DNA of 64,000 nucleotides from Hemiscyllium ocellatum (Eukaryota). A model generated the notes under the pieces. That model searched no databases, had not been told where the DNA came from, and was given only the letters and a program-made list of their open reading frames with translations. Both the position numbers and the translations under genes were made by a program. This document shows positions 19,911-36,460 of the stretch, piece after piece (positions within the stretch are counted from its first letter, which is position 1; each line of letters starts with the position of its first letter). The stretch is from assembly GCF_020745735.1 (NCBI RefSeq), contig NC_083433.1, forward strand, positions 11,357,363 to 11,421,362, read 5' to 3'.

Positions 19911-20089
19911 GAGAAAGTGAGGACCGCAGATGCTGGAGATCGGAGCTGAAAATGTGTTGCTGGAAAAGCGCAGCAGGTCAGGCAGCATCCAAGGAACAGG
20001 AGATTCGACGTTTCGGGCATAAGCCCTTCTTCATTCCTGAAGTAGGGCTTAGGCCCGAAACGTCGAATCTCCTGTTCCTTGGATGCTGC
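19911..20089. mobile_element. Fold-back PLE-terminus mini-element (family 1)
   Basis: 53-bp arms 19981-20033 and 20038-20090 with TTCC loop; TSD cattat(g/a)taccatag at 19896-19910 and 20090-20104. Confidence 0.85.
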
Positions 20090-21655
20090 CATTATATACC
20101 ATAGTCTAGCTGAAGTCTAATTGGTGGACTGGTAATAGTTAAACATAAGAGCAACATTATACATGTCAAGGACACATCTGGAGCTAGTTCTAGTTTGTTT
20201 CTTCAAATTTGAAATAAATCACCATATGCAGTACGTTATTGCAGAACCCATAAGTCAAAGTGCATTGAGTCATCTTCACTTCATAACTCGACACTATGGA
20301 GCTCCATGCCTCCCCCAGGTCTCCCTCAACCTACCCATTTAGGACATTTGGCAAGCAGCAGAGTGTAAAATGTGATGCTGTGGTGACAGCACAGTGTACC
20401 TATAATCTTTTGTCCACGGTAGGGGAGACATCAGGTGGCTTGATCACCTTTGGGACCTAGTGAGTGTCCAATTAATGGTCACTAATGCACTGTCTCCTAC
20501 TACTACTGAGAGGTGCCCAAGGCAAGTGGCCTTTTTGTTGCCATGGGATGGGAGGGGAAAGATCCTACCTATGCCCGACAGACACCCATGCTAAACCAGG
20601 CCCCCACCCATTCCCCAGACAAACCTGACCACTCTCAACCCCTTTCTGTAGTCTACCAGCCTGACCATGGAAACTGCCTGGACAAAGTTTGGGATTTATT
20701 TAGTCACTGATGTCTCAGTTTATTTCTGACTGAAGTTCACTCTTGGGACCTTGACCCTCCCTTGCAGGATTGAACAAACAGCTTCAGTTTGTACAAAACC
20801 TTGATTAAAGAGATAACCCCACTCAAAAGCACAAAACCGAACACCTTGACAGAAACCAGCCAGTGATTTTCAGAGACTAATCCAATCCCAGTGCACACCG
20901 GATGATTTCAAATTGCCTAAAGTCTGGTCGAATGGTTTTCAATGTTGAATATCCGGTATGTAAAAAGTTTTGAATTCCAAATTGTTGGGTATTTGCCAAT
21001 CATTGAAATAAAATTTCACAATGGAATTACATGTGAAATTAGGGTTAGGTTGCTGCATTCATTGATTTATTGGTTAAAGGACAATTACAAACAAGCCAGA
21101 CATACTATCTCTGGACATACCAGTCTTCCAGCTCATCCTCCAGTTGCAAACTCAGCATTTCAATGTTTCTTTAACTGGTTATATTTTGTGGTATAATTGA
21201 AAGGTTTGGGATAATCTAAACTTTGTGGGACCTGAGGTAAGTTATAATCTGGTATATCTGGCAAACATCCTCAGACTAGACATTTTTTATGTAGTCGATC
21301 AAAAGGTGCGGACATTGTTGGCTAAGTTAGTATTTATTGGACATCTCCAGTTTCCCTTGAGAGAGTGGTGGTGAGCCACTTCCTTGAACCTCCGCAGTTC
21401 ACATACTGCAGGAACACTTGCAGTGTTGTCAGACATGAGGGAAGTTCAGGACTTTGATCTAAAGACAGTGTAGGAATGGTGATGTATTTCCAAGTCAGGA
21501 TGGTGTGTGGCTTAGAATATAACAGCATAAGAGCCAGGCGTAGGAGTAGGCAATTCAGCCCCTCGAGCCTGCTGTCCCATTTGCAGTCATGGCTGATGTC
21601 ATCTCAGCCTCAACTTTACTTTCCTGCCTGTTCTCCATAACTCTTTAACCGTCTC

Positions 21656-21775
21656 ATCAGCATGGCCTAGTGGTCTAAGGCGCCAGACTCAAGGAGCGTT
21701 AATCCTTGCTCTGCATCTGGGCTTGTGAATTCTGGTCCCTTTCTAGGGGCGTGGGTTCAAATCCCACTCCTGACA
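21656..21775 (+). pseudogene. Intron-containing tRNA-Leu(CAA) copy, probably a pseudogene
   Basis: ATCAGCATGGCCTAGTGGTCTAAGGCGCCAGACT-CAA-G, intron 21694-21729 (36 nt), TTCTGG...GTGGGTTCAAATCCCACTCCTGACA; two acceptor-stem mismatches (A1:C72, C6:C67); TTTT at 21784-21787. Confidence 0.88.
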
Positions 21776-21787
21776 TGTCTCCCTTTT

Positions 21788-22100
21788 ACGGTGGCACAGT
21801 GGTTAGCACTGCTGCCTCACAGCGCCAGAGACCTGGGTTCAATTCCCACCTCAGGTGACTGACTGTGTGGAGTTTGCACGTTCTCCCCGTGTCTGCGTGG
21901 GTTTCCTCCGGGTACTCCGGTTTCCTCCCACAGTCCAAAGATGTGCGGGTCAGGTGAATTGGCCATGCTAAATTGCCCGTAGTGTTAGGTAAGGGGTAAA
22001 TGTAGGGGTATGGGTGGGTTGCGCTTCGGCGGGTCGGTGTGGACTTGTTGGGCCGAAGGGCCTGTTTCCACACTGTAAGTAATCTAATCTAATCTAATCA
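21788..22100 (+). mobile_element. HE1-type V-SINE, near full length and young
   Basis: tRNA-like head with A and B boxes, V-domain gtgtggagtttgcacgttctccccgtgtctgcgtgggtttcc, (TAATC)n tail. Confidence 0.9.
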
Positions 22101-22653
22101 CTAATTAAAAATCTGTCTATCTCCTCCTTAAATTCACTCACTAGCCTGGCAGCCATCACGTTCTGTGACAGGGAATTCCACACATTCATGACCCTTTGAG
22201 AGAAGCAATTTCTCCTCATCTCTGTTTAAAAATCTGCTACCCCTTTATTCTAAAATTTCTCATTCTATATGAGGAAACATCCTCTCTTAATCTACATTGG
22301 CAATCCCGTTTAACACATTATATACACAAATGGATCTTGTTATTCTAAACTCTAGAGAGTATAGGCCAAAACTGCTCGATCTCTCTTCATAAAGCAAACC
22401 CCTCATCTCTGGCTTGGAGTGGAAACACATAGTGGGTGGTACCCTCGTCTGCTGCCCTTGTCCTTCCAAGTGTTAGAGGTTGTGTGTTTACCAGGCACTA
22501 TCAGAACAGCCTTGGAGAGGTACTGCATTCCATCTTGTCGATGGTATACACTGCTGCCACTGTGCATTGGTGGTGAAAGGAGTGAATATTGAAGGTTGAA
22601 AATGTGTTGCTGGTTAAAGCACAGCAGGTCAGGCAGTATCCAAGGAATAGGAA

Positions 22654-22689: not shown

Positions 22690-23666
22690 GAGGAGAGGGT
22701 GCCAGGCAGGCTAAGATAAAAGGTAGGGAGGAGGGACTTGGGGGAGGGGCGATGGAGATGTGATAGGTGGAAGGAGGTCAAGGTGAGGGTGATAGGCCGG
22801 AGTGGGGTGGGGGCGGAGAGGTTAGGAAGAAGATTGCAGGTTAGGAGGGCGGTGCTGAGTTGAGGGAACCGACTGAGACAAGGTGGGGGGAGGGGAAATG
22901 AGGAAACTGGAGAAATCTGAGTTCATCCCTTGTGGTTGGAGGGTTCCCAAGCGGAAGATGAGGCGTTCTTCCTCCAACCGTCGTGTTGTTATGTTTTGCC
23001 GGTGGAGGAGTCCAAGGACCTGCATGTCCTCGGTGGAGTGGGAGGGAGAGTTAAAGTGTTGAGCCATGGGGTGGTTGGGTTGGTTGGTCCGGGCGTCCCT
23101 GAGGTGTTCTCTGAAGTGCTCCGCAAGTAAGCGGCCCGTCTCCCCAATGTAGAGGAGGCCACATCGGGTGCAGCGGATGCAATAGATGATGTGTGTGGAG
23201 GTACAGGTGAACTTGTGGCGGATATGGAAGGATCCCTTGGGGCCTTGGAGGGAAGTGAGGGAGGAGGTGTGGGCGCAAGTTTTACATTTCCTGCGGTTGC
23301 AGGGGAAGGTGCCGGGAGTGGAGGTTGGGTTGGTGGGGGGTGTGACTCCTCCACCGGCAAAACATAACAACACGACGGTTGGAGGAAGAACGCCTCATCT
23401 TCCGCCTGGGAACCCTCCAACCACAAGGGATGAACTCAGATTTCTCCAGTTTCCTCATTTCCCCTCCCCCCACCTTGTCTCAGTCGGTTCCCTCAACTCA
23501 GCACCGCCCTCCTAACCTGCAATCTTCTTCCTAACCTCTCCACCCCCACCCCACTCCGGCCTATCACCCTCACCTTGACCTCCTTCCACCTATCACATCT
23601 CCATCGCCCCTCCCCCAAGTCCCTCCTCCCTACCTTTTATCTTAGCCTGCCTGGCACCCTCTCCTC

Positions 23667-26089: not shown

Positions 26090-27690
26090 AAAGCAAAACA
26101 CTGCAGATGCTGGAGTTCTGAAATAAAAACAGAACATGGCAGCCTCTGCAGAGAGAGAAAAGCACAGACTTAACCTTTTTAGGCTGAAGTGACTCTTTAG
26201 AAATGAAGAAAGGTGGGAATGTGATGGATTTGGTGCTGCTGAAGATGGGCAGGGTCCGGTAGAATAATAGGGATGGTTAGGGTTAGGAAGCAGGGCAGGG
26301 GAGATTAAACACCAAAGCTATCTTGGAACAATAAGCAAAAGGAATGGTAATGGTTGCAGTAAAGAAGCAAAGCATTGGTCTAAGGTTCGTGGTAACAGCA
26401 AAGTAAATATCAGCTCTGTCTGAAAGCAAACACATGGGAGAAGATAGACTAGCACATGTAGAGAAAGAAATTTCAAAGACGGCAGTGTTCAGTCTCTGAA
26501 TTTGTTGAATTCCCTGTTGAGCCAAGAGGCTGCCAAGTGCCTGATTGGAAGATGAAGTGCTGTCCCTCCACCTTGGATTGTCTTCACTGGGGCCTTGCAT
26601 CAGGTCTAAGACAGAAATGTAAGCATTGGAGCAAGATTTTAAACTGAAATAGGAAGCAATCAGGGTCATGCTTGAGGATGCAGTGGAGGTGTTCTGCAAA
26701 GTGATCACTCAGTCTATGTTTAGATCCCTTCCGATTTGTGATATGAGCAGTGAAAACAGTCAACTAAATTGGAAGAAGTACACACACACTGTGGTTACAT
26801 TGGGAGTTGGATAGCTCAGTTGGTTGAATGCCTGGTTTGTATTGTACACTAATGCTACAGGTTCAATTCCCGAACTGACTGAGGCTACCATGACAGTCCC
26901 AACTTCTCGACCTCACCTGAGGTGTGGTGACCTTCAGGCTAAACCACCATCAGTTGTCTCTCTCTTTCTAATGAGAGAGCAGCCCTATGATCTCTTTTAC
27001 ATCTCGAAAGAGTATTTGGGGCCACGAACGTTGAGGAGAGGAGAGGTACACCTTCTATGATTACATGGGAAGGTGCCAATGCAAGGGGACGAGATATTGG
27101 AGTTGACCTGGGAGTGGACCATGGTGTCGTAAAGGGAACTATCCCATTAGAATGTTGACAGGGAAGGGACTGATGAGTCTGGTTCTAGCATTGTGCTGAA
27201 GGTGATGGCAGATGGCGGAGGATAAACCTTCGAATATGGAGGCTGGTGGGGTGGAAAGTGAGGACAAGAGGGTTCTGAGAGGGAGGGAAAGGGGTAAGAA
27301 CTGCTAGGTAGGAAATAGATCGAGGACCCTGTCAATCACAGTAGAGTCTGTTCTCAGTTGAGGAAAAGGGAATCATGTTGTAAATGAGAAAGTGAGGATT
27401 GCAGAAGCTGGAGATCAGAGTCGAGAGTGTGGTGTTGGAAAAGCACAGCCGGTCAGGCAGCATCTGAGGAGCAGGAAACTCAATGTTTCGGGTATAAGCC
27501 CTTCATCAGGAATGAGAGTTGTGGGCCGGGAGACTGAGAATTGTAAATACCACTGTGTTTGCAGAATTGTCAGAGCAGATGCAATAGATACGGAGAAATT
27601 GGAAGAATGTAGTTCAATATACAAGTTATCACTGCAGTGAAGAATTGGTAGGAAGCTGTTCCCAGTCATTCATGTCATTGATGCCACACT
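26090..27690 (-). mobile_element. Old, decayed Penelope-like element with a nested younger PLE terminus at 27386-27540
   Basis: Degenerate similarity to the 22595 element (ggaagatgaagtgctgt..., gtgaggacaag); nested piece flanked by ttgtaaat at 27378-27385 and 27541-27548. Confidence 0.6.
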
Positions 27691-32610: not shown

Positions 32611-32879
32611 CACAAATACTAGTAGAAATACTAGTAGAAACAAACCCATCCAACTCCTCCTTGTAAAACAACCTGTGCATTCCAAGCATTAATCTAATCC
32701 TTTGAACCATCTCCAACACATTTATGTCCTTCTGTAAGATACTCAATGACTCTGTGTCTCCAAAGCTGCCTCCTAGCCTCAGCCTTCTGAAGGACCAGAC
32801 AACATCTATGAGCTTTCTCCTCTTCACATGGTGGTCTTCATAGACCATACTCAGAAGGCGATGCCAGTCAGGGTCAAAC

Positions 32880-33572
32880 GACTTGGTAGTGTGGATGAGC
32901 AGAGGGATCTTGGTGTCCATGTACAAAGATCTCTGAAAGTTACCACCCAGGTAAGTAGTGCTGTGAAGAAGGCATATGGTGTACTGGGCTTTATTGGTAG
33001 AGGAATTGAGTTCCGGAGTCCTGAGGTCATGGTGCCGTTGTATAAGACTCTGGTGCGGCCTCATCTGGAGTATTGTGTGCAGTTTTGGTCGCCATACTAT
33101 AGGAAGGATGTGGAGGCATTAGAACGAGTGCAAAGGAGGTTTACCAGGATGTTGCCTGGCATGGTAGGAAGATCGTATGAGGAAAGGCTGAGGCACTTAG
33201 GGCTTTTCTCATTGGAGAAAAGAAGGTTTAGGGGAGATTTGATAGAGGTGTACAAGATGATTAGGGGCTTAGATAGGGTTGACAGTGAGAACCTTTTTCC
33301 GCGTATGGAGTCAGCTGTTACTAGGGGACACAGCTTTAAATTAAGGGGTGGTAGGTATAGGACAGATGTTAGGGGTAGATTTTTTACTCAGCGGGTTGTG
33401 AGTTCATGGAATGCCCTGCCAGTAGCAGTGGTGGACTCTCCCTCTTTATGGTCATTTAAGCGGACATTGGAGGTTATTGGGCTAGTGTAGGTTAGGTAGG
33501 CTTCGGTCGGCGCAACATCGAGGGCTGAAGGGCCTGTACTGCGCTGTATTTTTCTATGTTCTATGTTCTATG
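32880..33572 (+). mobile_element. Young CR1 LINE 3' end with uninterrupted ORF2 C-terminus
   Basis: ORF 32828-33490, RDLGVHV...PHLEYCVQFWSP...WNALP; (TTCTATG)n tail. Confidence 0.92.
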
Positions 33573-35669: not shown

Positions 35670-36460
35670 AAGTAGTAGATGGAATACCATGTGGGAAAGT
35701 GTGAGGTTTGGTGGGAAGAAGAAGTGTACATTATTTTATAAATGGACAACGGCTTCAAAAATCTGAAGCACAAAGGGACTTCGGAGTCCCAATTCAGAAT
35801 TCTCTTCAGGCTAACAGGCAGGTTCAGTTGGCAGTGAGGAAGGCAAATGCAAGTGTATTTCAGGAGGGCTAGAATACAAGAGCATAGATATACTGATGAG
35901 ACTGTATAAGGGTCTGGTCAGACCACATTTGGAATATTGTGAGCAGTTTCAGGCCTGGTCTCTAAGGAAGGCTGTGCTGGCTTTGAAGGGGGTGAGAGGA
36001 AGTTTACAAGGAATGATCCCAGGGATGAAGAGCTTGTCTTTTGAGGAGCAGTTAAGGACTCTGAGTCTGTACTCAATGGAGTTTAGAAGGGTGAAGGGGG
36101 ATCTGATTGAAACTTATGGAATACTGAGAGGCCTGGATAGAGTGGACGTGGAGAAGATGTTTCCAACAGTAGCAGAGACCAGGACCTGAGGGCGCAACCT
36201 CAGAGTGAAGGGATGACCCTTTAGAACTGAGATGAGGAGAAATTTCTTCAACCAGAAGATGATGAATCTGTGGAACTCATTGCTACAGACGGTTGTGGAG
36301 GTTAAGTCTGGAGTGTATTTAAGACAGCAACAGATCGGTTCTTAATTAGTAAAGAACCAGGGGTTGTGGGGATAAGGTAGGGTAATGGGGTTGAGAAATA
36401 TATCAGCCATGATTGAATGGTGGAACAGACTTGATGGGCTGAATGGACTGTCTTATGGTC
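35670..36460 (+). mobile_element. CR1 LINE 3' fragment
   Basis: LVRPHLEYCEQF...GDLIETY. Confidence 0.85.

Follow-up and report, generated by a model that had tools for sequence, protein, structure and literature searches.

Introduction

A SINE is thought to gain its head when the reverse transcriptase of a LINE leaves a retroelement RNA for a small Pol III RNA, and the origin of such a head is usually deduced long after the event from family consensus sequences. Bipartite chimeric retrocopies in mammals (U6/L1, 5S/L1, and tRNA/L1) are credited to Buzdin et al. 2002, as cited in PMC5729268. The mammalian tRNA/L1 chimeras consist mostly of antisense tRNA halves (bioRxiv 10.1101/2025.02.02.635956), and for the U6/L1 chimeric RNAs, formation has been traced to ligation by RtcB that precedes retrotransposition (Moldovan et al. 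2019, PMC6789731). For a bird SINE mobilized by CR1, a switch of the CR1 reverse transcriptase from SINE RNA to tRNA has been proposed (Suh et al. 2017, PMC5729268). In sharks, the V-SINE HE1 is listed with the LINE partner HER1 (Ogiwara et al. 1999 and 2002, as given in PMC3747384).

Here, we analyzed a 450-base block in which a copy of a tRNA-Leu gene or transcript and a SINE stand head-to-tail. The block lies within a 64-kb window, by which we mean the whole stretch of DNA that was analyzed, and it is an insertion into an old CR1 element. The features of the locus are as follows.

21500..21650, minus strand: 3′-most end of the host LINE (CR1-type), left of the insertion; aligns to in-window copies that cross the junction
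21651..21655, plus strand: gtctc, pre-tRNA leader or host LINE residues (ambiguous boundary)
21656..21693, plus strand: 5′ exon of tRNA-Leu(CAA) (Rfam, 41.5 bits; ARAGORN), with A1 mismatched with C72
21663-21673, plus strand: A-box-like TGGCCTAGTGG in the 5′ exon
21694..21729, plus strand: 36-nt intron at the canonical 37/38 site (Rfam insertion; ARAGORN intron length)
21730..21775, plus strand: 3′ exon of tRNA-Leu(CAA), with a long variable arm and discriminator A (Rfam, ARAGORN, sequence)
21754-21764, plus strand: B-box-like GGTTCAAATCC in the 3′ exon
21776..21787, plus strand: 3′ trailer tgtctccc plus TTTT (sequence; ARAGORN)
21788..22079, plus strand: SINE head and body, HE1/V-SINE-like, ~7 nt short at the 5′ end
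22080..22100, plus strand: SINE tail (TAATC)4 plus A; same tail in the closest SINE copies
22101..22480, minus strand: host LINE (CR1-type) continued, right of the insertion
22290-22472, minus strand: decayed C-terminal piece of the host ORF2 (BLASTP against the in-window LINE piece 35815-36186, E 1e-8)

Comparison with described chimeric retrocopies and SINEs

The block resembles the mammalian bipartite retrocopies in that a small Pol III RNA lies in sense orientation 5′ of a 5′-truncated retroelement, is joined to it at its oligo-U end, and would have been inserted with it as one unit. However, the enzyme at this locus would be that of a tail-recognizing CR1-type LINE rather than of L1, the 3′ partner is a SINE, and the block has neither a poly(A) nor a long target-site duplication. 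The 5′ partner also differs from that of the mammalian tRNA/L1 chimeras, in which antisense tRNA halves predominate, since here it is a whole sense precursor with intron and trailer.

In proposed mechanism, the block parallels PittSINE of passerine birds (PMC5729268), where the same switch would have put a new tRNA unit on the head of a CR1-tailed SINE. In that case, the switch was deduced from a family consensus, the old head was replaced by the new tRNA head, and the product was amplified. In contrast, the block is a single dead copy that retains the old SINE head and carries an unprocessed tRNA precursor in front of it, with T4 between the two.

With HE1/HER1 of sharks and rays, the SINE part has in common a tRNA-derived head with A and B boxes and a tail that is also found on a LINE of the same genome. 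A very high copy number in an elasmobranch is another point of likeness to HE1, as would be a putative match of the body to the V domain. The normal HE1 element, however, has no copy of a tRNA gene upstream. The U6/L1 chimeras made by RtcB (PMC6789731) likewise have their junction at the oligo-U end of a Pol III RNA and a 5′-shortened partner, but U6 bears a 2′,3′-cyclic phosphate made by USB1, which a nascent pre-tRNA is not known to carry.

The tRNA part retains the marks of an unspliced precursor

The sole tRNA in the window was an RF00005 match at 21656-21775 on the plus strand, with a score of 41.5 bits (Rfam; the gathering score for this family is 29). More permissive Rfam scans of the remaining window outside 21858-21933 gave no further tRNA, 5S, or U6, and a second copy of the tRNA part was absent from the window. 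When introns were allowed, ARAGORN reported a tRNA-Leu(caa) of 84 nt plus a 36-nt intron in the anticodon loop at 21656-21775; in its default mode, it called no tRNA in the window. The covariance alignment (Rfam) described a type II tRNA in which a 39-nt stretch replaces three consensus positions of the anticodon loop. The intron ends are ambiguous by 2 nt, and ARAGORN placed the intron at 21692-21727. A later indel was ruled out as the source of the 36-nt insert, which occupies the canonical intron site in a tRNA family with introns.

After the discriminator A at 21775, the sequence reads tgtctccc and not CCA. The TTTT at 21784-21787, a run of the Pol III terminator type, is the only T4 within the 450-nt block. 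The tRNA part therefore shows three marks of a copy of a gene or primary transcript, namely the intron, the trailer, and the terminator run, and its derivation from an unspliced precursor with the 3′ trailer still attached is supported. We refer to this state as unprocessed because of the intron and the trailer, not because of the leader. A first-pass annotation of this DNA had already described a tRNA-Leu(CAA) that was unspliced, its intron being 36 nt long, that lacked CCA, and that preceded a trailer tgtctccc-TTTT, and this description agrees with the Rfam score, the ARAGORN call, and the sequence.

In the Rfam alignment, acceptor pairs 1-72 and 6-67 are broken or non-standard, and thus the tRNA-Leu(CAA) copy is a pseudogene. 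The A at tRNA position 1 would fit CpG decay of the usual G1 next to the preceding C. In total, the tRNA part has at least two changes in 84 nt. With its mutated acceptor stem, the precursor did not adopt a cloverleaf in minimum free energy folding, and the covariance model was used instead. A scan for bacterial-type promoters and terminators, whose models are not relevant to Pol III, found nothing.

The SINE part is a nearly complete young copy

The SINE at 21788-22100 matches the abundant SINE family of the window over its whole length, and ~25 further copies were found in the 64 kb. Its head contains A and B boxes (TGGCACAGTGG ... GGGTTCAATTCC), which are common to the ~25 copies. Members of the V-SINE superfamily have a conserved central V domain of about 120 bp, and the body of the SINE is putatively of this kind (HE1 type), with the domain expected to include 21858-21933. 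V-like sequence is also known from the human MER6 transposon (PMC6887750).

In full-length copies of the closest subfamily, GGGCGGC precedes ACGGTGGCACAGTGG. The SINE of the block is without those ~7 nt, and CCCTTTT of the trailer stands where the subfamily has its first 7 nt. At the other end, (TAATC)4 at 22080-22099 is the ordinary tail of the subfamily, of which other copies have one to four repeats; in an older SINE subfamily, the tail ends in GGGATTCTATG. The SINE had been annotated as directly following the trailer, missing its first few nt, and ending in (TAATC)n, and it was found to do so in all three respects.

Counted outside 21858-21933, the SINE of the block and the majority sequence of six young copies in the window differ at 4 of 208 sites (1.9%), all of them by transitions. 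No other copy in the window is so little diverged; the rest range from 4.8 to 15.6%. This small distance from the young majority indicates that the insertion of the block is fairly young. The low decay of the tRNA part is similar to that of the SINE part and indicates a like age, and the block as a whole is a young copy with about 2% decay.

The last 50-60 nt of the SINE contain a GTGTGGA...TCCACAC hairpin around GGGCCGAAGGGCCTGT. This tail stretch aligns with LINE 3′ ends at ~13.35 kb (33/42 identical) and ~33.5 kb, each of which lies directly after a C-terminal piece of ORF2. The LINE and SINE 3′ ends have the GTGTGGA...TCCACAC arms, followed by (TAATC)n or a TCTATG-type end, and no poly(A). 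A tail that the SINE has in common with CR1-type LINEs of the window is the standard sign of SINE-LINE tail sharing, and on these alignments the SINE depends on LINEs of this kind.

The host is a CR1-type LINE

The flanks at 21500-21650 and 22101-22480 join as one repeat, and six other copies in the window cross the junction (nhmmer). In the multiple alignment, the insertion point lies inside continuous host sequence. An ancestral tRNA locus was ruled out, given that the host LINE runs on without a break from one side of the block to the other.

Several C-terminal pieces of LINE ORF2 are present in the window, the best preserved of which comprises 237 aa at 32777-33487. A protein word search with this piece matched 7,691 proteins. 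The best matches were bird and turtle reverse transcriptases with 45-58% identity, and the matches from sharks and rays bore the name "RNA-directed DNA polymerase from mobile element jockey". Among the matched proteins, PF00078 occurs in several and PF14529 in one; no Pfam family was found for the C-terminal domain of the LINE. The main LINE of bird and turtle genomes is CR1. The host piece at 22290-22472 is tied to the CR1-type domain only via the in-window copy 35815-36186, and the host copy itself has no endonuclease or reverse transcriptase domain left in the window. On these alignments, the host is the 3′ region of a CR1-type LINE on the minus strand. The six copies that cross the junction and the CR1-type ORF2 domain uphold what the first-pass annotation had claimed, namely an insertion into a minus-strand CR1 3′ end and not an ancestral tRNA locus.

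At the left boundary, the joined host aligns with 5 nt missing precisely at the insertion point; other host copies carry TCCTT, CTCTT, or similar (~5 nt) there. Therefore, gtctc may be host sequence, and the leader measures 0-5 nt. The left-junction region varies in length among the host subfamilies, and the closest copy aligns without those bases. The letters gtctc, which had been annotated as a 5-nt leader, are indeed present at 21651-21655, but their assignment to the leader is not secure. La-bound pre-tRNAs commonly lose the leader before the trailer, and a leader of either 0 or 5 nt is compatible with a precursor.

On the right, the SINE tail abuts a host CTAAT, and these 5 nt are microhomologous to the tail repeat when it is read in a different phase. 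A microhomology of this kind would be predicted if the nicked target strand had annealed to the microsatellite tail as a primer. With its subfamily-typical tail and the CTAAT microhomology, the 3′ junction of the block looks like that of an ordinary SINE insertion. No target-site duplication flanks the block in the host alignment; CR1-type insertions usually leave little or no duplication of the target site.

The two parts were very probably inserted together

The junction between the tRNA and the SINE lies exactly at the end of T4, and no repeat, host fragment, or target-site structure was found between the two parts. Both parts have the same orientation, nothing separates T4 from the SINE, and the host is broken once. 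In addition, both show similarly low decay, and a pre-tRNA copy, being tailless, would bring no CR1-type 3′ end with it. For these reasons, we consider it very probable that an already joined RNA or cDNA was inserted in one step.

Alternatively, the parts could have arrived separately, with the SINE inserted first or last and the pre-tRNA copy added exactly at its 5′ edge, either by retro-insertion or by the capture of a loose cDNA during repair. The missing internal duplication is no bar to such a history, given the little or no target-site duplication left by CR1-type insertions. However, the same nucleotide would need to be hit twice, and a tailless pre-tRNA offers no CR1-type 3′ end for recognition. 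The shared orientation, the zero host or filler bases between tRNA and SINE, and the similarly low decay in both parts also argue against separate arrivals, which we regard as very improbable.

Relatives of the block were sought outside the window as well. A protein word search with the frame that runs across the tRNA, intron, trailer, and SINE head found two SINE-head look-alikes and nothing else, and thus no parent, paralogue, or ortholog by this route. Metagenome contigs scanned for exact matches to the intron core and to the trailer junction yielded none, and exact-protein look-ups of the two flanking ORFs returned no record. Sequencing runs of the source organism contain 0.5-0.75 of the sampled sequence words and those of a second organism ~0.52, a value that both an empty site and a full locus with ~2% divergence would fit.

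Template switching as the favored origin of the join

Three routes to the join, namely template switching, read-through transcription, and RNA ligation, would give an identical product. We consider template switching the most likely of them, with a probability of about 50%, yet it is unproven. Under this mechanism, the block would be a bipartite chimeric retrocopy that was made in one target-primed reverse transcription event, in which the enzyme switched from SINE RNA to a pre-tRNA. The reverse transcriptase of a CR1-type LINE would have primed on the (TAATC)n tail of the SINE RNA, at a nick beside a CTAAT within the old CR1 3′ end, and would have stopped copying the SINE ~7 nt short of its 5′ end. 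It would then have taken up, as its second template, an intron-containing and 3′-untrimmed pre-tRNA-Leu(CAA) that ended in the terminator oligo-U, and would have followed this precursor all or almost all the way to its 5′ end. What resulted is a dead pseudogene.

We favor template switching, and infer a free pre-tRNA as the template, for several reasons. The last T of the terminator, at which a Pol III transcript ends, is also the point of the junction, and the tRNA part combines intron, trailer, and T4 with the lack of CCA. The host LINE continues across the block and nothing lies between the tRNA and the SINE, the 3′ junction is like that of a normal SINE insertion, and T-runs are not favored in the upstream flanks of ~20 other SINE copies. 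LINE 3′ ends match the SINE tail, and the ORF2 domain is CR1-type. The SINE is near its consensus (1.9%), as expected if an active or master-like SINE RNA was copied. Furthermore, a canonical T4 passes little read-through in human assays (PMC3141230), which weighs against the main rival, and Suh et al. 2017 (PMC5729268) proposed such a switch for CR1-mobilized bird SINEs.

Other observations count against template switching. The tRNA/SINE junction has neither a microhomology nor an untemplated base to mark a switch, and the left boundary is uncertain by ~5 nt. By analogy, the best-studied case would also count against it, since U6/L1 is a product of RNA ligation (PMC6789731). The account in the first-pass annotation stood in part: the insertion, the unspliced precursor, and the tail in common with CR1-type LINEs were all found, whereas the switch itself was left with a rival, in that read-through gives the same product. 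The premise from which the annotation had argued, that U6-L1 chimeras are established cases of template switching, is contested by the evidence for RtcB ligation (Moldovan et al. 2019, PMC6789731).

In the read-through route, a SINE would have lain right behind the T4 of a real tRNA-Leu(CAA) gene, and a Pol III co-transcript of both would have been retroposed by means of the SINE tail. The block would then derive from a composite source element and might belong to a small family. This route leads to the same product, and two observations lend it weight: Pol III runs into 3′ flanks widely in human cells (PMC3141230), and the local SINE density is very high, with ~25 copies in 64 kb. However, the 5′ end of the SINE must fall exactly on the last T of the terminator. 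At the SINE density of the window, the chance of this is ~2 in 10,000 per site and strand, and the SINE copies have no T-run preference that would raise it. Moreover, a canonical T4 allows very little passage in human or in vitro assays (PMC3141230), and a SINE so nearly consensus-like (1.9%) means that the source SINE would be very recent. We therefore regard read-through as unlikely, although it is the rival that we take most seriously.

In the ligation route, the 3′ end of pre-tRNA-Leu would have been joined to a 5′-shortened SINE RNA before copying, for example by RtcB, and the joined RNA would have been retroposed by means of the SINE tail. A fresh Pol III transcript has an oligo-U end with a 3′-OH and is bound by La. 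RtcB, however, requires a 2′,3′-cyclic phosphate or a 3′-phosphate, and ligation is disfavored because the fresh transcript offers a 3′-OH instead. Furthermore, a ligase acting at the time of splicing should join the 5′ exon and not the unspliced precursor, and the intron is intact here. On the other side, the tRNA ligase complex naturally acts on intron-containing pre-tRNAs, the 7 nt missing from the SINE would suit a cleaved 5′-OH end, and U6/L1 chimeric RNAs are made by RtcB independently of retrotransposition (PMC6789731). On balance, ligation seems improbable at this locus.

Whichever route joined the two parts, the data establish the anatomy of the block, its single insertion site, the tail in common with CR1-type LINEs, and the precursor state of the tRNA part. 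A further suggestion of the first-pass annotation, that the tRNA gives the SINE a second upstream Pol III promoter, is weakened by the T4 that lies between them (PMC3141230), since most transcripts would stop before the SINE. The acceptor stem is also mutated, and the tRNA part has no second copy in the window. The block illustrates how a SINE head could be added, and it gives no sign of the use or amplification of such a head.

Implications for the origin of SINE heads

We conclude that the block is a clean case of a known copying accident and not a new kind of element. The kinds to which it relates, bipartite chimeric retrocopies and the acquisition of tRNA heads by CR1-mobilized SINEs, are already known. 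What sets the block apart is that the captured RNA is a whole, unspliced, and untrimmed precursor in sense orientation.

Two wider readings can be put forward tentatively, and we doubt them more than we trust them: either the CR1 machinery of this shark recurrently captures unprocessed, La-type pre-tRNA-Leu, or a composite element headed by a whole, intron-containing tRNA-Leu gene is itself being copied. If either were true, the block would be a member of a recurrent class, and SINE heads would be gained from nascent Pol III transcripts. Young as it is, the block still reveals its second template, a nuclear precursor tRNA that was neither spliced nor 3′-trimmed. On this view, copying by a CR1-type LINE, which normally insists on its own 3′ tail, would have taken place close to nascent Pol III transcripts.

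Variation within the SINE family

Copies of the HE1/V-SINE-like SINE account for roughly one-tenth of the window, and they carry at least two types of tail: the younger copies in the window end in GTAATC(TAATC)n and the older ones in GGGATTCTATG. Two 5′ forms also occur there. One has what resembles an internal duplication of 8 nt (GGCACGGT GGCACAGT), and the other starts with GGGTGGCACAGTGG. The V domain of V-SINEs is present in the human MER6 transposon (PMC6887750).

CR1 ORF2 sequences in public protein records

The CR1 ORF2 end used as the protein query was as follows.

32777-33487, plus strand, 237-aa CR1 ORF2 end; matched proteins include records P0015, P0032, P0100 and P0048

Among the matches to this piece were public gene models from Stegostoma (under the name adenylate kinase 2), Grus (enolase superfamily member 1) and Mycteria (vesicle-fusing ATPase), all three of which look as though they have transposon ORFs fused in. 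A reverse transcriptase assigned to "Proteus mirabilis" and encoded on a 1.7-kb contig was 65% identical to the query; this appears to be vertebrate DNA within a bacterial assembly.

Hairpins with microRNA-model matches

The hairpin at 19981-20090 most probably represents a palindromic repeat or MITE rather than a microRNA gene. The mir-3202 model matched it to the same extent on either strand, at about 61.6 bits against a gathering score of 90. Another long hairpin, at 59043-59212 on the minus strand, matched MIR3440 at 45.5 bits, short of the gathering score of 105.

Penelope-like relics beside the host LINE

Two relics lie next to the CR1-type host LINE and are putatively assigned to a Penelope-like element endonuclease.

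22825-23394, minus strand, relic with a sub-threshold Pfam GIY-YIG match (19.3 bits, E 0.0014, cut-off 22.6) and a Cys-rich motif
26587-27146, minus strand, relic with a Cys-rich motif and, additionally, an HFAEH-type stretch

The motif shared by both (TFPCNRRKC and TFPCNHRRC, respectively) is a feature of Penelope-like element endonucleases.
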